DNA of 64,000 nucleotides from Octopus sinensis (Eukaryota), in NCBI RefSeq assembly GCF_006345805.1, contig NW_021833266.1:13528-77527 (forward strand), read 5' to 3'. The notes under the pieces are model-generated. The model saw only the letters and a list, made by a program, of their open reading frames with translations. It ran no database searches and was not told where the DNA came from. Shown piece by piece: positions 3,796 to 63,950 of the stretch (positions are counted from its first letter, which is position 1; every line of letters starts with the position of its first letter). The translations under genes and the position numbers were made by a program.

Positions 3796-4205
3796 TAATT
3801 CTTATGAACGCAAAAACTTATCGCCTATATTAATTGTTGTCTACTAATTTACTGTCGGATTATATTTAGATAAATTTGTTTCTAGTTTTTTGGTGATTTT
3901 TAGTGTCAATTTTGTATTGCGTAATATACTTTGTGTTTGCACTTGATATTTTTGTCACATGCAAACGTAATATAATTTATAGATACTTGGAATTTTTATT
4001 TTAAAGATGAATATGATAAAGAAATTTTGGGGATATTTTTTGATTTTCATAAAATTTAATCAGTTCAGGTTCAATCAAAACAATTTTTTATTGCAAAAAA
4101 TATTTTAGCAAATAATCAACAAATCATTGTCGTATCATAATTAATTGTGACAAGCGATCTATATATAACAGGATTATTCGATATAGATATTATTACAACT
4201 GATTT

Positions 4206-6345
4206 ATGCTTCCTAAATCTGACACGGCTGCAAGTAAACAAACCTTTGGTGAGAAATACCGACCAAAGTCTCAAAATCGTACAACTCGTCTTCTGAACCC
4301 GGCTAGTTCTTTCAGCATGAAACATGGCCCAGAAAACCGTTTGAACGTTAAGAGTATTGAATATGGATTTGGAGTATCTCAAAGACCTTCGCAAATTCAA
4401 ATTCTGAAGTTGAATTGTTTAAAAATTCGAGAATTCAAGAAAAAACTGAAATGAAAGAACTCAACAGCCGTCTTGCCCATTACATCGAAACATCGAGATA
4501 TAATGAATCTGAAAATAAACGACTAATGCAGGAACTTCAAAGAATCAAGGAAATAGTCGGCAAGGAGAACGACTCTATCAAAAATATGTACGAAACTGAA
4601 CTAAGGCAACTGAGGACTTTGCTCGACAATTCCGAACAAGAAAAAATGAAGCACATATTAACAACCCAGACCGAAAAAGATTCCTTCAACGAACTTTTGG
4701 AAATGTTGGTTTTTTATTTGTATTAAGAATTGTTTTGTCACTCGCTTATCAATATTAACTTTTTTGGAAACATTTAGGACTAACAATCACGCATTTGATA
4801 ACATCCACACTAATGGCACTTTATTGACGTAAAAGATATATTTAGACTTTATTACGATATTTTATTTGCTTTAATTAATTTAAAGGTTAAAAGAATTTGA
4901 AGAGTTGGAACGAGAGCTAAAAGAAAAAATTGAAAGCAAAGAAAATGACCTTTTAAAATGCGAAAGCGAAGTTTCGATGCTTAAAAGACAAAATTCCAAA
5001 CTTTTAAGTGAAAGACAACGCGAAAAAAACAAAATTGAAAAAGTCAGAGCAGATCTGGCTCGTGTAAAAGCCGTAAATAGAATTCTAAATTAACCTTAGG
5101 ACCTTGCAAATGAAACGTTGACTCGAATCGACATTCAAAACAGATTTCAGTCGCTTTGTGAAGAACTAGAATTCATTAAAGATATTCACAAAAAAGTACA
5201 TTCTACCTCAAACTACATATCTGTAGGAAATCAAAGACCTTAGTGACGTAGCAAAAAACAGCCCAATTGGTCAGTGCCGTGAGTGGTGGGCTAATGAGTT
5301 CTCCAACTGCATAGCCGAAATTCAGTCCGAGTATGATGAAAGACTGAGTTCAATTCAGAATGAAATGGAGTCATTTTATACTTGCAAAGTGATTTTTATT
5401 CGAATTTCAATCTTAAGATTCAAGATGTTCAATATGGACAAAATAAAAATATTGTAGAAACCGGTCACATAAGAGATCAGATCTCATCAATAAAATTTGT
5501 AAATTCTGATTTGAAGACAAAAAACAGTCTAATAGAACAAGAAGTTGAGTCTAACATTTGTCGTTATTTATTTTAGAAAGCAATTCTCAATGCTCAAAAC
5601 AATAATCTAAAACGAGAACTAAGTGAACTGCATTTAGAGTTTGACAAAATGATAATCGAAAAAAATACGGAAACTGAGGAAATTAGAAATGTTATGGAAA
5701 AAACTCTTTTGAACTACAGACAATAACCGACCACAACATGTCACTTAAAATGGAAATCCTGGCATACAGAAAACTGATTGAATGTGAAGAAAAACGGTAA
5801 ATTTATTATTTAAACTATAAAACAGTAATGATGGAAATAAACAATCAACTCTTTCATTGCCTCGACAAGACTCGAGAATGAGTTATAAACTAAAATAATA
5901 TTTTTGTAGAACATTCTTCTCCTGTGAAGCGTTCAACCTACCAAAAAAGCACCAAAGGTCCCATAACAATAAATTCTTGTGATGTCGACGGAAAATACAT
6001 TTCAATCGAAAACTTAAATCCAATGAAGGTATATTTAGTTATTTTATTTAAGGACGAAAAATTTGGTGGATGGAAGATAATTCAGACAGTCGACGACCAT
6101 GAGGTGCATAGTTATACTTTTGGTGACTACACTCTCAAAGCGGGGTCAAAAATGAAAATTGTCTGTGAGGGGACCAATCCAGAAAGTAGTACCGATCTCG
6201 TTTGGCATCATAAGAGTAAATTGGCCATCGGAGATTGTGTAGTCACGTCGCTTGTAAATGACAAAGAAGAGGTTGAGTTAATTCTTTATGTATTGAGTAG
6301 GAGAAAGCTGTTTACACGCTCAAGACTATTCATAGTTCTGATTAA
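4206..6345 (+). CDS. Lamin-type intermediate filament protein with lamin tail domain, no NLS and no CaaX (cytoplasmic IF / nematocilin-like)
   Basis: Coil 1A SRIQEKTEMKELNSRLAHYIE; long coil 1B; rod end EILAYRKLIECEEKR; LTD KRSTYQKSTKGPITINSCDVDGKYISIEN; after intron 6272-6300 ends EKAVYTLKTIHSSD*. Probable -1 indel near 4381. Confidence 0.85.
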
Positions 6346-7749: not shown

Positions 7750-7823
7750 GCCCCGGTAGCTCAGTTGGTTAGAGCGTCGTGCTAATAACGCGAAGGTCTA
7801 GGGTTCGAGTCCCTGTCGGGGCA
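7750..7823 (+). tRNA. tRNA-Ile(AAT)
   Basis: Cloverleaf GCCCCGG/TCGGGGC acceptor, anticodon loop CTAATAA, T-loop TTCGAGT; T6 Pol III terminator at 7825-7830. Confidence 0.96.
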
Positions 7824-9460: not shown

Positions 9461-10079
9461 TCTTTCCTTGCGGACTTTTTTATTTTCACTTTTAAAATGA
9501 TTACATTTGGCTGTAATAGCAGAGTTAACTACCCAACATGGGTATCTCCACACACTTGGTGAAAATATTGTTATTTCTTCTTTTAAAATTTCGTTAAAAA
9601 TGTGCAAAAATCGTTCAAAGATAATAAAAACACCACTCTCAGTAATAATACAGTTCGTTCGAAAAATTGACGAAATTTCTATTCAAATTGAGGACATATT
9701 GTGTGATAAATTGAGAAGAATTAAATTTTTTGAAAATGCTGCTTTTTCTCAAAACATTTATTTATGTTGAAATCAGAAATAAATTCCCATTTTCATAATT
9801 TAATAAATATTCAAATTCCACGATGAATCTATACTATTCGAATCCATAATGTACTGATCTGGAATCTAAAATCAAATATTTCGACACATATTTGTGTTCA
9901 GAACTAATTGCGATAATGGACAACATCGAGAGTGATATATCCAGAGTTATCCTTGATTTCGAATTCCTAAATTATAATTCGTGGACCAGAATAAAAACTG
10001 CCCGTGATCTCCACTTAATTCATCGATTTTTACAATAAAAACATTAAATTGATTTGTAATTGATTTGTAAGGATTTGTA

Positions 10080-10345
10080 ATAAAGAAGGAATTGAAACCA
10101 ATGGTTCATCGCTTTTGGAGCACAAATGATCGGATTTGTGTTCTTCAGATCAACATGAATAAGCTTTTCCCATCTAAAAGCTTACTATCCATTATAAACG
10201 TATACGCACCCCACAGTAGATGAATTGAAAAAGACCCCACTGAGATAGACTTGTTCTACTCTTGCCTCTCTGAAGCTTATTCTGAACTTGTTCGCCAAAG
10301 TGGGATTACAAAGAAACCCGGATGAAACCTTCATGGGAAAACACA
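10080..10345 (+). mobile_element. RTE-like LINE apurinic endonuclease remnant
   Basis: TNDRICVLQIN..LLSIINVYAPH..FYSCL; degenerate. Confidence 0.55.
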
Positions 10346-10599
10346 AATATGAATCAACCCCGTCAATTGAATTAACGTTGCGCGTTGTTATTCTTATTGT
10401 TCTCTAATCTTTTATTTCTTTCTCTAATTTCCTTTCATATTAATTCTAATTCTCTTTCATATCAATTCTTATTCGTAGGTGTTATTTTATTTTATCAAGT
10501 CAATTGTATTTTATCAAGTCTCTATCATCCCCTTATTTTTTTTTCCCAGTAATCCTTTCTCAATCCATTATCTGTTTCGATGTTGTATTCTTTTATGCA

Positions 10600-10860
10600 T
10601 TTTCCTAATCCTATTCCCAATCCTGTTTCTCTCTGCATCATCTGCAACATGATTAACAAAAGGAAGAGAGGCCGATCTTGCTCCTCTTGTACGCAGTTCT
10701 TTTATCTTTCATACGTTTCTCTAACTCGCCGAACGTCAGAACGCCTTCCAACCTGGGTCTGTCGCGCCTGCCTTTCTGACGCCTCATCATTGCCATCCCC
10801 TCTTGCGATTTCTGGGTCTTGCCATTCTCCTAATTCCTTCCCTTTTCCCGATTCCATACC
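10600..10860 (+). mobile_element. PHD-like zinc-finger fragment, probably the 5' region of a non-LTR (CRE-like) element
   Basis: CIIC..CSSC..WVCRAC; similar to KTCVSC..LCSSC on the minus strand at ~21330-21400. Confidence 0.5.
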
Positions 10861-10879
10861 CAGCACATTGAAAAAAAAC

Positions 10880-11345
10880 TAAAAAGTCTGCAGATTGAGT
10901 GTCTTTTATCAGCTATTAAAAAGAAAACTCTCCATTCAAAATGATAATGAGACTTTCGATATAGAGACATCCTCAAAATGGATTGTTCTTTCTTCTGCAG
11001 GACAGGAATATTTTCTTCCGCGAGCTGGGTTCGAAATGCCGACATTGCAAAACTTCTAAAAGGACAGTCGACCAGGCGATATAACGAAATTGTTAAATAC
11101 ATACACATGCATCTATGCAGAAAAGTTGGATTCAAAAAATCAAAAAGGTTAAAGACTCACTCTATCCAAAGCGTAATTACCAACGATCGTGATGAAATAC
11201 GAGATGACACTACTATCCCTATCGAATCAAAAATTCAATATAACAAGCCGGAAATTTTCCTATACAACAAAAAATTAAACCAGATATGGCTAATAGAGAT
11301 TGGAGTGACGTGTGTGGATAATTCAAAAGCAGTTGAAATCATAGA
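10880..11345 (+). mobile_element. R4-like non-LTR retrotransposon C-terminal (CCHC/RLE) fragment
   Basis: RRYNEIVKYIHMHLCRKVG..KRLKTHSIQSV..YNKPEIFLYNKK..LIEIGVT; homologous to the 21593-23386 ORF C-terminus. Confidence 0.8.
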
Positions 11346-11718
11346 CTTATAAAGAAGATGGAGAATTACACCATTATCAATGACAAGTACTGTAAATTTG
11401 CAATAAATTTACAGACTTTATCTTAAATCTAGTGATCCCAAGTTAGTCATATCCCTCGATAATGAAACCGAAATGGAGCTTGTGGCAAAATCATTACATG
11501 AGTTTTCACATGGAGGAGTAAATAAAATTGAATATGAATGTCGACAAAGATATTTTACTGTCAAGAATGACATTATCAGAAAAGTCAGTCGAAATTGTGA
11601 AGTTTGCAAATTTTGACGTCCTTTAAAAGTTCAAGATTTTTTGTAATTGTAGATTGGAGATATAAATCACCATGTGTTTGCTTCTTGTCCAAATGAATGT
11701 TTTCAAATAGACATAATA

Positions 11719-12566
11719 TGTCACATGCCCTGTTCGTTACCATGCCCCGCTCGTTACCATTGCTCTAAATTTTTAAAATTTCAATTTAAAATATTAAATG
11801 ATTGAAATATATTACTTATTAATTTAAAAATTAATATATTATGGATTTTTATTTTTCAATGCTTAAACCATTTCATTAAAAAACATAAATTAAGCATGCT
11901 GTTTTATCTCATGGTTATGGTTAGGGTATAGGTTAGGGTTAGGGTATAGGTTAGGGTTAGGGTGAAGGTTAGGTTTGGGTGAAGGTTAGGTAGGGTTAGG
12001 GTGAAGAGGGAATGGTTGGGTTTAGGGTTTGAAAAAATTTAAAGTAGAATTTTCGAATGGAGATACAAAGATTGTTCACATGAAAAGAATCAAAAAAGGA
12101 CAAATTTAATTTTTCGTTTTAAATTCAGATCTATATATGATTTTAACTAAAAAAACTGGATAAAGTTTGAGTTTTTATAAGAGATCTACAGATGATTTTA
12201 ACCTATCTTTTTACATTTCAAAAAATGTTTTAAATAAAACTAAAAAATGGTTAGAGTTAATTATAAAAACTATCAAATTATGTGCCTTTAAAGCGTTTCA
12301 CACAATTCACATTTTTAAAATATGTTTTAATGTGCTTATCAGTCAAAGGTTTGTTGTATAAAAATATTATTTTAATTTATTTGTTTTAAAGCATCTTTTA
12401 GTATATCATTAAATTGTACTCTAATTAACTAATATATAGGTTGAATTTATGTCGTTGTGATTGATTATTAATTTTTCTAAAAAATTGAAAATTCATTAAT
12501 CAATTATTTCTCAGAAATAATTCGGAGGTAAACGAGTGGGGCATAGTATCCCTGAGGCATGTGACA
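11719..12566. mobile_element. 848-bp non-autonomous TIR element (TGTCACATGCC...GGCATGTGACA)
   Basis: About 40-bp imperfect TIRs; flanks TAATA/TTATA (5-bp TSD, one mismatch); its removal restores the integrase reading DII-NLK. Confidence 0.87.
11913..12031 (+). repeat. Interstitial telomere-like (TTAGGG/GGTTAG variant) array
   Basis: ggttagggtataggttagggttagggtataggttagggttagggtgaaggttagg...; lies inside the 848-bp element. Confidence 0.88.
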
Positions 12567-13184
12567 TTATAAATCTGAAAAGATTTTCACACTAAACGAA
12601 AATTTCAAATGGATTTTAACGGTCATTGACATTTATAGTAAGTTGGTTTCTTAAATTTTTTTTATAGATTTGCATTTGCACGACCACTTTATAATAAGTC
12701 TGGTAAAGAAGTGTGTCAAAACTTGAGATCTTTGTTTCGCCTAAATGTACCATGCAAATTTCTTCAATCAGACAATGGGTCTGAATTCAAAAATCAAGAA
12801 ATAACACAACTATACGTTGATTTTAACATCAAACAAATCCACGGAAGGCCTAATAATCCTCGGGCTCAAGGAATTGTCGAAAGATTCAATCAAACGATAA
12901 CCAGGAAGTTGTCAAAAATGATGGACAACAGTAAAAAAAAGTGGGTGATAAATTAGAAAATGCTTTGTACAGTTATAACATATCTGTCCATTCATTTTCT
13001 AACGAAAGATTTTACTCTTTGTGGATTTATTAATAAAATGAAATTAATTGAAGTTAATCTTAATTCAAGCTCAATGTAACAGGCTGCCCATAGGTATCGC
13101 GTGGCCCATGTGACATAATAAAATCAGAGTGTTAACGCGTGTACTGTTGTTCACTCTGGTTTATTTTTCTTTTATTTATTGTAT

Positions 13185-13419: not shown

Positions 13420-14530
13420 GTTTATTTAATACAATAGCTCCAAAAGAAAAGTGGCCGAGGAATTAGAGCTTAGGGGGCTTGATAACGAGAGCCACGAAGG
13501 TCTCAACTTCGGTTTTGTTCCAGGAGACTGTCTTATCTCCCTCAGCGAATTCAAGTTTTTGCCAGGATCGCGTCTATCGTGTCAACACTCCGCTCATGCA
13601 GGTTTTCCAGCGGACTGCTGAGCTCCAGGCCGAATGCCAGTTTGATGGCAAATCGTCTGGTTTTTTCGAGTTTGGCGATTAGAAGGTCCCTTTCATCAGT
13701 TTGGTACCAGCCCTCCGAACCATAGATTATTAGTGGCTGAACACAAGTCTGGTAGATGTGTAGAAACGTTTCTGCGCTTAGACAAAACGCCTCAGTCCTT
13801 TTAGGATTTTCGCTCCTTGTTTCCGCTTTGCATGCACATGGGGTTTGTATGACCCGGTGGGGTCTATAGTTACTCCCAGGTAACGTAGGTTCTTCGATAT
13901 AATCAGGTTCCCATAATCCTCGAAAGTCGGTTTTTTGTCACGACCCATTGAAATCCAACAAATGGTACTTTTGTCCCGAGCGAGATTCAAGCCTTTACCA
14001 TTGCACCAGATTTCAAGTTCCTCCAAGTACGGTTCTATTCTGCTCCAGGACAACCTTCTTCTGTGTCGGGGTCCCCACATCGAGACATCCGTAACCAAAA
14101 TATCGTCCGCGTAGATAATTAGTCTGCACGTAGGAAAATGTGGTTTCGGGACGTCGGCCAGAAATATATTGAAGAGCAAGGGGCTGAGAACCGATCCCTG
14201 AGGAACACCTCTCCTCAGATTCACGGCCTTCGATAACAAATTTCCACAACAAATGAACGATTTTCTCTCGCACAAGAAGCCCTTTAGCCATCTGACAGTT
14301 TTTCGCCCAGCGCCCAACTCCGCTACTTTATTTAACAACCCCAAGTGCCAGACACTGTCAAAGGCCTTGCAGACGTCCAGGCAGACCGCCGTTAGGCAGG
14401 CTTTATGGAGTTTGGCCCGAAACAGTTCTTCCTCAAGAAGCGAGAAACAGTGACCGGTTGATCGACCAGGTCTAAAACCCCACTGTTCTTCCGCGAGTAT
14501 ATTATTTGTTCCACGTAAGCCGATAAACGA
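13420..14530 (-). mobile_element. LINE reverse transcriptase (Jockey/I-like), 5'-truncated
   Basis: EQWGFRPGRST..LDVCKAFDSVWH..GVPQGSVLSPLLFNIF..YADDI..RYLGVTID. Confidence 0.9.
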
Positions 14531-21592: not shown

Positions 21593-23386
21593 GTGATGGA
21601 CAGGTGGAACGTCCATCTAAATTACAACAAATGCGATATAGCCGAGGTGAAACTAGAGAGGGGCATATTACAGGGCGACAGCATGTCTCCGCTGCTGTTC
21701 GTCCTCTGCCTAGAACCGCTGACTGCCCAATTCGAACAAATGTCGATCGAACATGAAGGAGGGTGTTTTAGCACCAACCATCTCATGTTCATAGACGACA
21801 TTAAGCTGTTCGCTCGGTCTTCAGAGATCCTTCACTCAATGGGTAAAGTCCTGAAAGGTTTCATGAAGGCCGTGGGGTTGGAGCTCAACTACAACAAGTC
21901 GGCGACTAACACCCCTGTGTGTGGTGACCTAGTCAAAGTCTTGGAGGAACACCAAGGATATAAGTATCTTGGTGTGGTTGAGAGTCCAGCCTCATTAATC
22001 ACACCCGAAACGAGAAAGTGTGTAGTGGAGGGTGTGCGTAGTAGGGCGGCAATGTTATGTAAGACTCGGCTTAATGCACGGAACTTATTTCATGCCTTGA
22101 ACGAGTATGCCATCTCATTGCTAAACTATTACGTTGGCCTGATCGAATTCGAGCCGAGTGAGTACGATGAAATGGACCTTATTGTCCGAAGAGTACTCCG
22201 AGAGAATCATGTCCACGTGTTGGCAAGCAATAAGGAGAGATTGTACTTGTCTCGCGGGCAGCTAGGACGTGGACTGAGTAACATCGTACACTTAAGTGAG
22301 CGAATTCTTACTAAGATGCACGACACCTTGTGGAGTGGGTCGAGTGTATCCCAAAGGAAGGCTGCCATCCTTGCTGCTGAAAAAGCGCGTGGTACACACC
22401 TAGGGACCATAAAAGGCTATGTGTCGGCTAAGTATGGTCTAGGTGCTACCCAAGTTAATGTGAAGGAGTTGATCAAACTTCAAAAGGAGTCTTTAATTAA
22501 AAAGATCAACTTAAAAGTCTTTCACAAGACTCTCTTTAGCAGCCTGGACAACCCGCACATTGACGTATCGTCGTCATCTACGTGGCTGAAATATGGGAAT
22601 AACTCTCCCCGATCAGAAGGGTTGTTCTCATATTTGCAGGATAGAAACTTTTTTAATGGTCAACGGAAACAGTGTAACCACTGTAAGAGTAAGGCAATGA
22701 CCGTTGACCATTTAGCCACGAAGTGCGGGAGTATGCTTTACCATGATTACACATGGAGGCATAACGAGGTGGTGAGGTCCCTCCATCTTTTGCTCTGCAA
22801 TAAGTACGGCTTGAGGCGGTCCAGAAAGTTGCGAACCCATCGAGTTCAATCGGTGTGTGAGAACTCGCGGGTGTGCATTAAGGTGGATACCCCCATACGC
22901 ACCTCGATTGTTGTCCAGCACAACAGACCCGACATTGTGGTCCACGATAAGGTCACCGGGGAGATTGTTATCGTGGAGGTATGCATCACGTGCCTAGACC
23001 GTTTGCAGATAGTGGAAGTGGAGAAAAGGAGGAAGTATGACCTCCTTGCAAACGAGCTAGGACTGATGCACCAGTGCAAAGTCCATGTCATCCCGTGTGT
23101 GATGACATGGGATGGACTGGTCACCAAATACCACAAGCGGTACTTAAGACAGTTGGATGTAGATAAGTCTCTACAGGCTTATATACAGTCAACTGTTCTT
23201 AAGAGGACTCTGGAGAGTGTCTCGTTTGATGCTCGCCGATCCAGCCCTTTCCTGACGTTTAGTCAGCAAGAGGCGCTGGACTGCACCTTCTCGAAGGTCT
23301 ACAGTGACAGAGAAGAGGAGGAAGAAGGGGAGGAGGTGCGTGGAGTGCCGCCTTCTGCTCACTTCGAAGGCTCTGGACTTAGTTAG
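21593..23386 (+). mobile_element. R4-like RLE non-LTR retrotransposon, 5'-truncated, uninterrupted 597-aa ORF (RT, CCHC, RLE)
   Basis: RGILQGDSMSPLLF, FIDDIKL, YKYLGV, CNHC..DHLATKC, RHNEV, NRPDIV, EKRRKY; intronless and visibly GC-richer than flanks. Confidence 0.95.
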
Positions 23387-25599: not shown

Positions 25600-26200
25600 T
25601 TTACTGACAAAAAAATATTTATAGAATAAAAGAAAGACTTGGTAGAAATGAGCGAAGAGAAAATATCTGCCGAGAAAAAAACAGATTTGGTAGAAATGGA
25701 AGGAGAGAAAATATCTCCAAAGAAAAAGAAAGATTTGGTAGAAATGGGCGAAGAAAAAATATTTAATGAGCAGAAGAAAGATGTTGTAGGAATGGCCAAA
25801 ATAAAAATATTTAATGATAAGAAAAAAAATGGGCAAAGAGAAAATATTGACTAAGACGAAGAAAGATTTTAAACAAATGATGATCAAAGAGAAATTTTCT
25901 ACAGACGAGATGGAAATTTTAGCACAAATGATTGTAGATACAATTTATACTGAAAGTAACACAGTTTTGTAGGAATGGTCCGAAAAAAATGTCTAATGAG
26001 AATTGAAAGTTTTAGTACAAATGATCAAATGAATATCTACAGAGATAAAGGAAGTTTTGGTACAAATGGCCAAAGAGTAAATATTTACTGAGAAGGAAGA
26101 TTGAGTACAAATAGGACAAGAGAAATCATTTAGTCCGGAAAGTAAAGAATTCAAACAAAAACACTAATTGTATCAAAGAGAAAATTTTTACTGAGATGAA
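25600..26200 (+). repeat. 48-bp minisatellite with a decay gradient; first units encode DLVEMxxEKIxxxKKx
   Basis: ga(c/t)ttggtagaaatg-type starts at 25636, 25684, 25732, 25780; progressively degenerate copies to ~26200. Confidence 0.85.
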
Positions 26201-34977: not shown

Positions 34978-35601
34978 TTATAACTCATTATTCCTGGCCT
35001 GCCTTTCCTTCCATGCCTGGGGAGCATATTTTGGCATCTGCCTTTCCACTGCCCTCACAAAATCGCTCTTCTCTGGACATTGTAGACACGTGTCTTCTGC
35101 ATTCCAATCATTCAATATTTTCTTGAGTTGTTTAATCGGCATTTTGTTAAAATTAGCAGCAACCAAATCAATTGGCTTGTCTATAAATTTATAAAATGGT
35201 AGAAAACCGTATTTTAGTGAGCAAATAATATCATTTTGGTTGTTCAGTGATTGACATATTTTTTCTGTGGGGAGGTATGAGAGAGGACGAGTTATTTCGT
35301 TCAACATGGAGGTTGCTGATGTCTCACTTCCCCCCACTGCGTAACACTTGAAATTAGATTTTTTATTTTTTACAAATCGGGATTCTTTTCCTGTGGCTTG
35401 CTTACAAAGGCTGATTATTTTGTTTTTTATCAAGTCAGGGTCACTTTTTTCAGACTTATTGAGAGATGAAGTTACTTTTTGGAGAAACGTTTGGCACACT
35501 TTTATATATTTTTTATTATTTTTACCTTCACAAGTTTGTTTTGCCTCAAAAACTGTAGACAGACACGACAATATAGTCAGACACAACAAAACAGTATACA
35601 T
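34978..35601 (-). CDS. MANF: MANF/ARMET (saposin-like plus SAP domain), ER protein
   Basis: Signal peptide; TCE|VC..C..KESRF|CYAVGG..SAT..EKIC..ICSLKY|DK..KQLKKILNDW..CLQCPEKSDF..KY; C-terminal NNEL. Confidence 0.93.
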   Translation of the reverse strand: MYTVLLCLTILSCLSTVFEAKQTCEGKNNKKYIKVCQTFLQKVTSSLNKSEKSDPDLIKNKIISLCKQATGKESRFVKNKKSNFKCYAVGGSETSATSMLNEITRPLSYLPTEKICQSLNNQNDIICSLKYGFLPFYKFIDKPIDLVAANFNKMPIKQLKKILNDWNAEDTCLQCPEKSDFVRAVERQMPKYAPQAWKERQARNNEL

Positions 35602-35694
35602 GTAAGTCACTAATTGGTCAATTCAAACATAATAATTTATTATATTCAAAAATAAAAAACAAATTTTATTTTATAACCAATTAAACAAAAACAC

Positions 35695-37962: not shown

Positions 37963-40900
37963 TTAAAAATGCCAAAAAATAAATGTTAAACTAATTTTAA
38001 AGAGTCCCGGATAGTGAACGTTTACTTCCGTGTGGTGTTGTATTCCGGGAATCATTAAGACGGTTTTTGTACGGATAGCTTTTATGTCCATCATCTATAA
38101 CAGGGGTGTCAAACATGCGGCCCTCAGCGTACTTTACCAAACATAAGTGCGGTCTGATTTAATGGCTATAAAATGCAAAGAATTATTTTTTATTTTTTTA
38201 CATTTAATTAAAATTTTTAATCGTATTTTTAAATCTTGTTTGTTAATGTCACATGCTTCTTCTGGAATAAAAAAGAAACCCTCCTTGAAAGATGAATGGA
38301 GAGTGTTTCAAGATAAATGGGAACTTCTCTATTTTTGCACAATGGTTGATGGAAAAATACATTGTTTCATATGTAACAAGTTTATTGCTATACCGAAAGA
38401 ATACAACCTAAAGAGGCATTATCAATCTAATCATCTATCATACAATTATTTCGAAGGTATTAAGTTGCTTATTAACCAAGAAGGTCCAATGCGTGTTTCA
38501 AAGCTAAATGAATTGCGAAAAAATTTATCTGCGTTACAAACTCATTTCACAAAAAATCATAATCGAAGTACTGCATTAGTCACTGCAAGCTATGAAATCA
38601 GCAGAATGCTTGTAGTAAATGGAAAATCATATTGTGATGGTGATTTTATCAAACAATGCCTTGTAAAAACAGCGAATATTATTTGTCCAGACGACGCCCA
38701 CTTGTTTAAAGATATTAACAAGAAATACTGTTGCCGAACACATTAATGAAATGGCATTGAATTTGAAACACCAATTAAAGTCTGATTTGTTAAAATTCGA
38801 ATATTTTTCAATTGCAATCGATGAAACAGTCGACGTCGTTGGAATTACACAATTAGCAATCTTTTTTAGAGCCTGTGATTCAGATTTTAATATTTATGAA
38901 GAATTTCTCGAACTGGTACCAATGCACGATACTACTACAAGTAAAGATATCTTTATAAAACTTCTACAAATTCTTTTTGAATATGGGTTTGATTTGAAGA
39001 AGCTTGTATGTTTATGCACTGATGGTGCTCCGAATATGGTTGGACGACATGCTGGCGTTGCCGCCAATTGCGAGCTGAAATAGAAAAGGTAAATCCCGGG
39101 TCATCATTTGCTCATTTTCATTGTATTATTCATCAGCAATATTTGTGCTCAAAGATATTAAAAATGGAAAATACCATTAGTTTGGTCACGAAAACAGTAA
39201 ACTATATTAAAGGTCATCCCCTCAACCACCGGCAGTTTAGTAAACTGCTGACAGATATTAATAATCAGTTCAGCGACATTCCTTTTTATACTCCAGTCCG
39301 CTGGTTATCACTTCACAAAGTTGTTAAAAGATTTTATTTGTTGAGATCGGAAATAATTTTATTTATGGAGATGAAAGGGCAAAACACAGACGAAATGAAA
39401 AGTCAATCTTGGATCAAAGATTTAGCATTTGCAGTGGATATTACCACACATATGAACGACCTTAATTTAGAATTGCAGGGCAAAGACAAGCTCATAACTC
39501 AGTTGTCAGATCATATCAAGTGTTCTATTTCGAAAATAAAATTATGGAAGTTTCAGCTATTACAGTATGAAATTTTCTAAAAAAATTCAGCAAACTCTTT
39601 TTCTTCGTCTTAATTATCCATAAAAACTAAATATAAAAGTTATTTTTCATTATAATGCCAATTTTTAATTTATTAAATTTGACCATTTTGATCTACCTGC
39701 AGTGAAAAGAGGCCTTTATTTATTTATAACTTTAAATCAAAAAAACAAAGATTAGTATTTCGTCAAACTTCCTTTACAATTATAGACTGAATATTCTTCT
39801 GGCATCGAATTATATAATTCCCTAATAAAACTGTCATCAATTGCCTCCCATTCCTCTTTCGTAATTTTCCATAAGTCCTGTACTGTTTCAGGGACCTTTA
39901 ATCGTATTTTTGACTTTAGCAAACACCAAACATGCTCAATTATATTGAGATCCGGTGATTGACTTGCCAATACTCTACTATAGTAATGCCACTGTTATTT
40001 AAAAAATCTCTTGTAGATTTGGATGTGTGGCAAGTTGCCCCATCTTGCTGAAATTTGTAATTTGATGTATATAAATCATTTAGTCCTTCAGATATAATAG
40101 ATTGATAACGTGCAGAATTTAGTTTTTCATTGCATAATATTAAACTTCTTTTGCCATCAAATCGTATCGCTCCCCATACCGTTATGCTAGGGGCAAATTT
40201 GACGGTTTCTGAAGTGTATTTTTTTTCATATCTCATTGAAGGTGGTCTTCTGACATATTCTCTTGAATTGAAGAGCTGAATTCGACATTCGTCCGAAAAA
40301 ATAACAAATTCCCAGGCCATATTAAACATCGACTGACACCAATATTTTCGAGCCATCATATGTCGACACGTAAGTCAAGGTTTTTTGACAGCAATCCTCC
40401 CGAATAAATTATACCTCCTCAATGTACGTCTAACTGTATCTATACTCACGGAATTATCAAAATTGATCGATTTTTTAAGTTCAAAAGCTGTTTTTTTGGG
40501 ATATTTTTTAGATGTCCTGACAAGAATCCTTTCTTTTCTAGGAGATAATTTCCTCTTCGCTCCAGTGTGAATACGGTCAAAATAGCCAAAACCAGATATG
40601 TAACGTTGAAATATTTTTTGGATCGCACATCGAGAGATTTTAAGTTCTTTTGATACTTGTCGCTGACTCATTCCATTTTTCAAAAAACTAATAACTTTTT
40701 TACGATTTTCAAAAGATACACGAGGCATGAAATAGAATTAACACGTTTTAGTTAGATTTAAATGGATATTTAACAAAAAAATGTAATTAAATCTAAATAT
40801 ATTTTAAATAAATAAAGTGCCCTCTTTCATTGCATGGCCTAGAAAAGGTCAAATTTAATAAATTAAATAAAATTGGCATTATAATGAAAAATAACTTTTA

Positions 40901-51378: not shown

Positions 51379-51450
51379 GCCTACGTAGTTTAGCGGTTAG
51401 AATTCCTCGTTGTGGCCGAGGGGATCCGGGTTCGACTCCCGGCGTAGGCA
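51379..51450 (+). tRNA. tRNA-His(GTG)
   Basis: GCCTACG/CGTAGGC acceptor, anticodon loop TTGTGGC, T-loop TTCGACT; T6 terminator follows. Confidence 0.96.
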
Positions 51451-52204: not shown

Positions 52205-52393
52205 TTAAAAAAATTGAAAAACTTTATACTCATGAATGACTGTGTTTTTGTCGGGAACTCCTCCCAGTTTTTTAAATTGTGTTTCGTTTATTATAGAATG
52301 AATAGTTGTGTTATACATAAAAGTGCTTCGTTTAATAAATTGAATCCAGTTTTTAATTGAGTCTTCACTCATCAGCTCAGAAAGCGTCGTCAA
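52205..52393 (-). mobile_element. Integrase C-terminal remnant
   Basis: FMYNTTIHSIINET (YN...HS motif that follows the rve core). Confidence 0.4.
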
Positions 52394-60746: not shown

Positions 60747-61467
60747 CTATATGGTTCTCAGGGTGGTCGATAGACCTCACCTGATTCTCCACGACGATAG
60801 TCGTAGAGTGCGATGCAGCTGGTGGTGGACCACCAGGCTATATGGTTCTCAGGGTGGTCGATAGACCTCACCTGATTCTCCACGACGATAGTCGTAGAGT
60901 GCGATGCAGCTGGTGGTGGACCACCAGGCTATATGGTTCTCAGGGTGGTCGATAGACCTCACCTGATTCTCCACGACGATAGTCGTAGAGTGCGATGCAG
61001 CTGGTGGTGGACCACCAGGCTATATGGTTCTCAGGGTGGTCGATAGACCTCACCTGATTCGCCACGACGATAGTCGTAGAGTGCGATGCAGCTGGTGGTG
61101 GACCACCAGGCTATATGGTTCTCAGGGTGGTCGATAGACCTCACCTGATTCTCCACGACGATAGTCGTAGAGTGCGATGCAGCTGGTGGTGGACCACCAG
61201 GCTATATGGTTCTCAGGGTGGTCAAAGACCTCACCTGATTCTCCAAGACGATAGTCGTAGAGTGCGATGCAGCTGTGGTGGACCACCAGGCTATATGGTT
61301 TCAGGTGGTCAAAGACCTCACCTGTTCTCCAGACGATAGTCGTAGAGTGCGATGCAGCTGGTGGTGGACCACCAGGCTATATGGTTCTCAGGGTGGTCAA
61401 AGACCTCACCTGATTCTCCACGACGATAGTCGTAGAGTGCGATGCAGCTGGTAGTGGACCACCAGGC
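60747..61467. repeat. GC-rich tandem array, 8 units of ~91 bp
   Basis: Unit starts at 60747, 60838, 60929, 61020, 61111, 61202, 61291, 61377; no spacers. Confidence 0.98.
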
Positions 61468-61849: not shown

Positions 61850-63950
61850 AAATCTCTACAAAAGCTGAAAAAAGAACGGAGATTGATAGTATTAACGGAG
61901 AACTCTTGAAATATTCACCAACTTTACTGATGTATGAACTACCCTTCATCTTAAATAATATATTTACTAAACACAAGCCTGTCCCACTAAGGTGAGGAGA
62001 TTTAATACTTAAACAGAAACCCGAGAAGCCGGCTGGACCTGTGAAAAACGTCAGATCGATTATCCTTTGGAAACTAATGTCCTTGATTAATAGGATTTCT
62101 TCTAAGTAGACAAAAACGTATTTCTGAGTTAATGTGGATTAAGAAGAGAAAGGTTCACTCCATACGCTGTATAGACACGCAATGGATATGTGACACGATG
62201 TAGAAATTCCAGAAACTGTTCAGATATAAAGAATTAATCTTTCCCAAATATTTGATAATATAATTGTGACAGTCCGAATAAAATACACGCCGAATAATCT
62301 ACACTTGTCACAAATGGCTGAAAAAATTAGAATCTAAAAATTAGTATGAAAAAAATCAATAATTGATTATTTATTTTAGTAGAATCACATTTATGTTTTA
62401 TATTAAAAAAGCGTGAAACATGCGTGTAGTGAGATTATTTAAGGAAACCTGGACAAAATCAAAAAATGAAAGACTCCACTTTGATACATCGTCAATCGAG
62501 CGGCATGAGCGATACAGGCTCACAAAATTGGGAAAGAATTTCTTTTGAAAATGGAAAAACATATTTTCGAAAAATGGGCTTAAATTGCGTTTTTTCTGTG
62601 AAGATGAAATCGATTAAAGCTTAAGTGCGTGAGGTCCAACTTAATAAATAAAATTTAGGCGGAACATAACTATAACCACTTTGGGAGAGACCGGCTTTTT
62701 TCGAAATTAAGAAATCTCTATTTCTTAATTTCGAAAAACATGTACGTGGGAGGCCTCGTGCTCCTTGGGTACAAGGGCAAGTCGAAAGGTTAATGATTTA
62801 AAATCGATTTGTAGATTTAATCAAAGCATAAAACGCTGGATATCGTCGGCAAGTTCTTCTCAAAATTGTTTTGGACGATATCGCGAATGCATAAAGGACA
62901 TCGTGTATGATTACAATAACAGCATTCATTCTTCGACAAAAAAAATCCCTTTTTATATATTCATGGGTGTTGAAAATCTGGAAGGATTGATGAAGGGGAA
63001 TGGAGCAACTTTTAGCCTATGATTCAACTGGATTATCAGAGGCACGAGAAAGTGCATTATAAAACTTAATTATTGCTGGCGAAAAAATGATTGAAAAAAG
63101 AAAATGGAGATACGACGAAGAAAATATCAATGTCGGAACGACTGTGCTTTTAAGGTCTCAAGCGTCAAATTAATTTTTAGACAGGACAACGATGCCAATG
63201 TTCGGCAGTATCCGCTGTACGATGGACTTGATGTTAATAAGTATATTGTTGTCGAGCGAAGAAATGATCTCTATGTTATCGAAAAGGAGGACGGTGAGCG
63301 GTTAACACGGAATTCATATTTCTCGATTAGCTAAAATTGATTAATTTTCATAAATCCATAATAAAAATAATTTTTTATTTAAATTAACGATAATTTATAT
63401 GAAAATTTTATTAGGATAACCTAAAATGGAATAACAATATTCAAACGTAAAGTTAACTGCGTAAATTGAGTGTGGTTGGTTTTGTTTATATAAATTAGTA
63501 AAAAGGTTAATGAATTTTACATTAAAAATCATATTTTTAATAATTAACATTTTGTTGTGTAAATTTTAATTTCAGTAAAATAAAGAATGTAATTATTCGG
63601 CGTGTATTTTTTCGGACTGTGACATAAATTAATCTACAAAAAAACGATTAAGTTTATTTGGGACCTTGCAAGACGAGGATGCGTGTTCTACATGCGAACG
63701 CCAAAGTTTGGCTAATTTACAGCAGTTTCACCAATGAAAAAGATATCAACGAAATAAGAAAAGTGTTTAATCAAACCCCTGGAGTATGAATAAAAAAACG
63801 GAGATCACAACTGTCAAAATAAAGAGTCAATTGACAGACAAAAAATGGAGAACAAACATATTTGGATCATCTATTGGAGACTGGGAATATTTTCCAGCGA
63901 ATAAAAATGGCCTCAAAGGTTTTTCATAATGAAATTTGGCTTTAGACTTT
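61850..63950 (+). mobile_element. RTE-like LINE RT remnant, interrupted by the 62265-63624 element
   Basis: IDSINGELLKY..ILNNIF..QKPEKPAGPVKNVRSI..LSQIFDNI. Confidence 0.6.
62265..63624 (+). mobile_element. TIR-flanked, intron-containing integrase DNA transposon (Ginger-like), internally deleted
   Basis: About 34-bp TIR TGT(G/C)ACAGTCCGAA(T)AAAATACACGCCGAATAAT; AEHNYNHFGRDRLF; HVRGRPRAPWVQGQVER|FNQSIK; YDYNNSIHS; NVGTTVLLR|QDND; introns 62634-62658, 62789-62814, 63155-63180. Confidence 0.9.

Follow-up and report, generated by a model that had tools for sequence, protein, structure and literature searches.

The segment at positions 11719–12566 is probably (at odds of roughly three in four) a non-autonomous, Ginger2/TDD-like cut-and-paste transposon that is nested in a decayed element of the same kind. 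All positions are those of the window, the whole 64-kb stretch of DNA that was analysed, which is AT-rich animal DNA with ~33% G+C. The segment, hereafter the insert, is an 848-bp non-coding stretch (11719–12566, plus strand; 26.5% G+C) that is bounded by inverted repeats and interrupts the integrase-type gene of the surrounding element, hereafter the host element. Because a single copy is visible, the case for mobility of the family is built on structure and not on copies. The arrangement would be a textbook-like case of a non-autonomous DNA transposon inside a dead autonomous relative. The features of the locus are as follows.

11413–13007, plus strand: broken integrase-type transposase gene with an H2C2 zinc finger and a DDE core, interrupted by the insert
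11714–11718, no strand: left target-site duplication copy TAATA, which pairs with the right flank at 4/5 bases
11719–11758, plus strand: left terminal inverted repeat of the insert, with a TGTCACATG tip, then two tandem 17-nt units, GTTAC last
11913–12030, plus strand: telomere-like G-strand array, with 7 exact TTAGGG units among variants, an 18-nt higher-order period and no C
12527–12566, minus strand: right terminal inverted repeat of the insert, with a TGTCACATG tip and units ending in GATAC and GTTTAC
12567–12571, no strand: right target-site duplication copy TTATA, with one substitution
13076–13115, minus strand: right terminal repeat of the host element, TGTCACATGGGCCACGCGATACCTATGGGCAGCCTGTTAC
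13116–13120, no strand: TAATA flanking the right end of the host element, the left partner being absent from the window

The ends of the insert and the interrupted host gene

The insert begins with TGTCACATGCC and finishes with GGCATGTGACA, ends of ~40 nt apiece that each contain two 17-nt units. An earlier note on this DNA had proposed an 848-bp element with such ends, and the element is present as described, with TGTCACATG in inverted orientation at 11719 and 12566 (11719–11727 on the plus strand and 12558–12566 on the minus strand). This 9-mer occurs five times in the 64-kb window, where 0.37 occurrences are expected, and a count of five was reached in 0 of 100 shuffles. Three of the five copies are the two ends of the insert and the terminus of the neighbouring host element. 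The copies at 3953 and 38247 were considered as element ends and rejected as chance matches, since the repeat architecture is missing there.

The tip inverted repeat of the insert reaches 11 nt, and a second inverted block (11738–11755 and 12531–12548) is 89% complementary. When the first 9 nt were dropped, the score observed between the left and right repeats was reached by none of 2000 shuffles; as a whole, the two repeats are only ~75% alike. At the left end, TRF reported a tandem repeat of period 17 with 2.2 copies and 90% matches, its units being CATGCCCTGTTCGTTAC and CATGCCCCGCTCGTTAC.

Stop-free stretches inside the insert reach at most 65 aa, and a protein-level comparison with the integrase relatives revealed no homology within 11719–12566. 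The interior, compared with the host element, the rest of the window and the loci of the relatives, returned AT-rich noise only. It contains a 55-nt tandem duplication at 12108–12202 (plus strand), whose two 40-nt cores are 75% identical. Neither a second copy of the insert nor a direct copy of the 848-bp segment was found within the 64-kb window. Among metagenomes, 67 loci matched the pattern of the insert ends, and these were taken as chance matches; one alone aligned past the pattern (blastn, 41 nt), and it lies on a GC-rich, bacterial-looking contig.

For the host gene, Pfam searches with the separate pieces identified Integrase_H2C2 upstream of the insert (E = 1e-4) and rve downstream of it (E = 1.7e-7), and tblastn with the relatives gave 40–57% identity. 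The gene is broken by at least five in-frame stops, three phase changes and one insertion (848 bp). Its first ~45 codons are missing, together with the left end of the element, and the ~165-codon C-terminal region of the relatives has no counterpart in it. One phase change falls on a short GT...AG stretch, possibly an intron. Judged from its sequence, the host copy is dead and unable to supply transposase. A LINE-like endonuclease piece and a C-terminal piece, recognised by eye at 9900–11350 (plus strand), adjoin the truncated left side of the host element.

The right terminus of the host element lies 108 bp past the last protein homology. On the minus strand (13115–13076), it reads TGTCACATG..GATACCTATG..GTTAC and is then followed by TAATA, just as the earlier note had it, and it shows the same two-unit build as the ends of the insert. 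With the shared 9 nt removed, the score of the host end against the insert ends was reached by 0.2% (left) and 0.8% (right) of 2000 shuffles. The host repeat matches the insert repeats in the 9–10-nt tip and in the architecture only, whereas the GC-rich inner parts differ, with inner units of the CATGGGC type in the host copy and of the CATGCCC type in the insert. The ends thus support the view that the insert is a non-autonomous element sharing its type of terminus with the integrase element that it interrupts. The left end of the host element was not found in the window by the exact tip, by the tip plus GATAC, by a loose architecture pattern or by blastn with the right end.

The flanks of the insert, TAATA and TTATA, had been proposed as a 5-bp target-site duplication. 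A match of at least 4/5 is expected at random window positions with P = 0.025, and the probability rises to 0.10 if any length between 4 and 8 bases and up to one mismatch are admitted. Taken alone, the flank match is weak evidence. The position of the insertion point within the gene provides a second line of evidence. The insert lies two codons past the first catalytic Asp of the host integrase-type gene, and the motif that it interrupts is contiguous in all of the 32 relatives scored, in which the columns after this Asp are Q (25), I/M, D (32), L (27), I/V, D (30), L/M, R/K, K/S/E/R, Y/F and K/S. The left piece of the split motif, at the edge of the insert, reads Q-I-D-I-I and corresponds to columns 1–5, and the right piece, in the phase that starts inside TTATA, reads I-N-L-K-R-F-S and corresponds to columns 5–11. 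The last three bases of TTATA re-encode the conserved residue with which the left piece closes. Since the column-5 codon is found on both sides of the insert, a 5-bp duplication is supported independently of the flank match. The proposed duplication is therefore borne out, by 4/5 matching bases and by a conserved codon that is doubled across the insert.

A 4-bp duplication was also considered, because the length of the insert plus 4 is divisible by three and the gene pieces on either side of it lie in one window phase. It was rejected, as the flanks match at 0/4 positions in this register and the motif fits the 5-bp phase. The 5-bp reading costs one extra phase change in a host gene that is already broken. 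An AT-only T-W-A-T-A site with a 5-bp duplication, which the earlier note had put forward as the target preference, agrees with the integrase family (TATTA in Dictyocoela; 4–5 bp in Ginger2/TDD).

The split motif bears equally on the reading in which the segment is native to the host element, as an intron or as an internal spacer whose ends became alike by internal duplication. Ginger transposase genes with introns are known (PMC2836005), and the GT...AG stretch mentioned above coincides with another interruption of the same gene. However, the motif that the segment divides is unbroken in 32/32 relatives, the genes of the relatives are uninterrupted there, the junction codon is present on both sides, and the ends are TGT...ACA rather than GT...AG. 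This reading is extremely improbable, and the segment is treated below as an inserted transposon.

Relatives of the integrase and probable assignment to Ginger2/TDD

A HMMER search with a 99-aa core piece of the host gene against 1.84 billion representatives gave 4164 hits, the top ones being 52–59% identical to the host core, whereas a word-indexed protein search with the same piece found nothing. The best overall relative (59% identity) is a metagenome protein. The closest named relatives, with 52–55% identity over the core, come from three microsporidia, Dictyocoela muelleri, D. roeselum and Nosema granulosis; their database label is 'Gag-Pol polyprotein'. More distant relatives are 'KRAB-A domain-containing protein 2-like' proteins of animals and glomeromycete fungi, and the best relatives of solved structure are retroviral integrases (E~1e-7).

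The typical relative is a stand-alone protein with a median length of 430 aa and the core at about residues 166–262. The relatives contain H2C2 and rve domains only; RT, RNase H and protease are absent. The D..D35E triad was present in 51/51 relatives. GP[YF] was not found past residue 250 in any of the 51 relatives, nor was [YF]P[YF][YF], the YPYY motif, within their first 110 residues; both motif regions are missing in the window copy.

Two relatives show a complete element. In D. muelleri (SDVU01000034.1, 4756–6571; L001), a 450-aa gene is enclosed by inverted repeats of 213 nt with 98% complementarity, in a 1.8-kb element with TGTCGCG tips and an exact TATTA (5 bp) on both sides; the flank is ATT-periodic, and other duplication registers are conceivable. 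As its repeats are 98% alike and its gene is intact, this element appears to be young. In L071, a Logan contig, the relative has 600 aa and is enclosed by 48-nt repeats whose tips are TGTGG/TGTCG, the element being 2.2 kb long with TTAA on both sides (4/4). Both elements comprise one gene between inverted repeats and have no RT, RNase H or protease. Of the host element in the window, the right terminus alone is visible. Among the other relatives inspected for duplications, no clear inverted repeats were found at L069 and L073–L076, the right end of L072 is cut off, and L077–L081 are collinear across whole contigs, so that no boundary is readable.

When seven ends (three from the window and four from the relatives) were aligned, they shared an invariant ATGT tip and two 17–18-nt units closing with G[A/T]TAC or GCAAC. 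The score of the host right end against the L071 repeat was attained by 0 of 2000 shuffles. The two-unit architecture that is common to all these elements could mark transposase binding sites.

The microsporidian 'Gag-Pol polyprotein' genes (L001; P0003, P0153 and P0010) are in fact stand-alone integrase-type transposases. The nearest named relatives of the animal element are intact elements, bounded by terminal inverted repeats, of microsporidia that infect amphipods, and an exchange of these elements between parasites and animal hosts seems conceivable. In the literature searched, no paper tied Ginger2 to microsporidia, and those elements were not described as Ginger-type. An rve gene that is 43% identical to part of the microsporidian transposase was seen at 4001–4963 of ENA ERZ25039529 contig_57512, with alphaproteobacterial-looking neighbour genes (GcrA, Fur and TsaD). 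It may be a bacterial insertion-sequence relative of the integrase family.

In Ginger2/TDD elements, the integrase-like transposase has H2C2 and DDE but neither GPY/F nor YPYY, the termini follow TGTNR, the inverted repeats measure about 45–300 bp and the targets are AT-rich; short non-autonomous derivatives are known (PMC2836005, PMC10045372). Ginger2 duplications are given as 4 or 5 bp (PMC10045372), with 4 bp in animals and 5 bp in TDD-4/5 (PMC2836005, PMC10045372). Likewise, the elements described here, taken together with the relatives, show a stand-alone H2C2 and DDE transposase that lacks GPY/F and YPYY, terminal inverted repeats of tens to hundreds of bp, a 4- or 5-bp duplication at an AT-rich target and short non-coding derivatives that have just the ends in common. 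Their tips follow TGTNR, with TGTCA at both ends of the insert and at the host end, and TGTCG and TGTGG in the relatives. All examinable Ginger2/TDD features were found, the single gene between inverted repeats in the relatives L001 and L071, and these features would place the elements there. The insert is MITE-like in having no coding capacity and ends common to an autonomous family, with the tip and the architecture shared and the inner sequence different.

There are also differences. Unlike those of Ginger2/TDD, the inverted repeats in the window are short (~40 nt) and imperfect, and the insert bears a telomere-like array. The 5-bp duplication at the insert matches TDD-4/5, whereas the animal families so far described make 4 bp; it would contribute one example of 5 bp among animal Ginger2/TDD-like families. 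With the Dictyocoela and Nosema elements, the window elements share the TGTC tip, the two 17–18-nt units per end and the 5-bp AT-only duplication. In contrast to the window elements, the Dictyocoela element has 213-nt repeats that are 98% alike, an intact 450-aa gene and a different host organism.

Three other families were rejected. Ginger1 is characterised by a CCGG/CCGT 4-bp duplication, YPYY, GPY/F and a C-terminal OTU or Ulp1 domain; here the flanks are AT-only, and these motifs and domains are absent in the close relatives. IS3EU/GingerRoot has TA..TA ends, a 6-bp duplication and no HHCC, as opposed to TGT..ACA ends, 5 bp and the H2C2 present here (PMC6839031, PMC10045372). Polinton/Maverick has AG..TC ends, a 6-bp duplication, a protein-primed polymerase and a capsid; the termini and the duplication differ, and the relatives here are 1.8–2.2-kb, single-gene elements.

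The ends and the gene content of the relatives also distinguish the insert from a solo long terminal repeat, the remnant of an LTR retrotransposon after recombination. Solo LTRs too begin with TG, finish with CA and make duplications of 4–6 bp, and the insert, with 848 bp and a 5-bp duplication, is typical of them in both respects. Those of the Gypsy type are likewise sub-kilobase and come from elements with an integrase of the same superfamily. For LTR elements, duplications of 3–6 bp are given (PMC10045372). Moreover, the window is rich in retroelement debris. However, solo LTRs derive from direct repeats around gag-pol and do not have a 40-nt two-unit inverted repeat. Between the ends of the insert, inverted similarity extends over ~40 nt and has a two-unit build, whereas LTR ends normally share only a few bases, and the same build is found in the inverted repeats of single-gene elements. 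In addition, the host terminus follows the integrase homology at 108 bp, no LTR-length repeat precedes it, and RT and RNase H are absent in the relatives of the integrase. A solo LTR is thus a decidedly unlikely identity for the insert, and assignment to a Ginger2/TDD-like transposon is preferred.

The telomere-like array

The ~120 bp of TTAGGG-variant repeats reported in the earlier note are present at 11913–12030, where seven exact units stand among variants that include TATAGG, TGAAGG and TTAGGT. The array is 47% G and has zero C. TRF gave 74% matches with 15% indels for a period of 6 nt, and 90% matches for a period of 18 nt (three hexamers). As the 18-nt period fits better than the 6-nt period, the array reads as a decayed minisatellite and not as a freshly made telomere. 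Its latest growth would have been in 18-nt steps, following the mutation of some hexamers.

On either strand of the window, G-quadruplex-type motifs were found in the array only (11913–12030). Outside the array, the window holds 11 TTAGGG and 6 CCCTAA, which is about the base-composition estimate by arithmetic, with no shuffle test. An 18-nt inverted repeat (11852–11869 and 12019–12036, 83% complementary) flanks the array, its right arm lying within it; this repeat could be a chance product of AT-rich DNA.

Short interstitial telomeric sequences of vertebrates are attributed to telomerase acting at repaired breaks. The array resembles them in being a short, internal, strand-biased TTAGGG-type tract away from a chromosome end. 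The differences are its location in a transposon, its degeneracy and its higher-order period of 18 nt. A literature search on telomeric repeats within DNA transposons found nothing specific.

The earlier note had further suggested that the element family could spread telomeric sequence, to which telomere proteins would be recruited or which would seed breakage and healing. In favour of this, the array is real, with a strict strand bias, it supplies the sole G-quadruplex-type motifs of the 64-kb window, and it is located within a mobile-type element. However, one copy is present in the window, with seven exact units only. The far better fit of the 18-nt than of the 6-nt period argues for local growth as a minisatellite; moreover, the array is not terminal but internal, and the elements are old and decayed. 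A role as a recruiter of telomere proteins or as a seed of breakage and healing is unsupported for an array so short, degenerate and 18-nt-periodic, and the functional reading as a whole is very unlikely.

An extended version of the preferred reading would make the insert one member of a multi-copy Ginger2/TDD-like miniature family that has the G-quadruplex-capable array as a regular module, accounts for a sizeable share of the interstitial TTAGGG tracts of the genome and has a recent common ancestor with transposons of microsporidian parasites. This version is unlikely; if it were true, an exchange between parasites and animal hosts would be implied. The telomere angle is relevant only if many copies carry the array.

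Proposed history and surroundings of the insert

In the history that we propose, the transposase of an intact relative elsewhere in the genome would have moved the insert in trans. The two 17-nt units of each end would be bound by this transposase, and the TGT...ACA tip would be the site of cleavage and joining, by analogy with integrases. The insert would have been joined to an AT-only T-W-A-T-A site, opened by a cut with a 5-bp stagger, inside the core-coding region of another copy. The array would be passenger DNA, namely a short TTAGGG-type tract that was mutated and then enlarged in 18-nt steps, by slippage or unequal exchange. This tract may have been captured, or may have been made by telomerase-type filling of a break as the deletion derivative arose. 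Both the insert and the host element would be relics today.

The earlier note had attributed the mobilisation in trans to the same integrase as that of the host element. The part of this claim that stands is that the two are transposons of the same kind. In its present state, the host copy itself cannot have been the source: it is dead, has lost its left end and differs in its inner repeats. Because the host copy is dead and its inner repeat is unlike that of the insert, a closer autonomous partner is expected; no matching autonomous partner was found in the window. One relative (L071) has a 4-bp rather than a 5-bp duplication. The ends of the insert are only ~75% alike and the host gene has many breaks, indicating that both elements are old.

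The surroundings contain genes, further transposon remnants and tandem repeats. Exons resembling those of alpha-actinin, of lamin (with a lamin tail domain) and of deoxyhypusine hydroxylase were recognised by eye from ORF translations. Two tRNA genes are present.

7750–7823, plus strand: tRNA-Ile (AAT)
51379–51450, plus strand: tRNA-His (GTG)

Two further, much more diverged remnants of integrase cores are located at 62712–63010 (plus strand) and 52229–52387 (minus strand), with no TGTCACATG-type terminus near either. By eye, a LINE-like reverse-transcriptase fragment was seen at 13778–14344 (minus strand), and a LINE-like open frame of 597 aa at 21593–23386 (plus strand) corresponds to the C-terminal half of a reverse-transcriptase protein. 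An ORF at 38147–38746 (plus strand), which by eye resembles a domesticated transposase of the hAT/GTF2IRD2 type, adjoins the TGTCACATG copy at 38247.

A 91-bp unit is repeated 8 times with 97% matches at 60747–61467, where the DNA is G+C-rich relative to its surroundings, and a purine-rich 48/96-bp tandem repeat at 25610–25856 would give a K/E-rich repeat if translated. Finally, the start of an open frame of ~207 aa at 34978–35610 (minus strand) resembles a signal peptide; the frame has an ARMET/MANF-like relative, and its best database match is only 34% identical.
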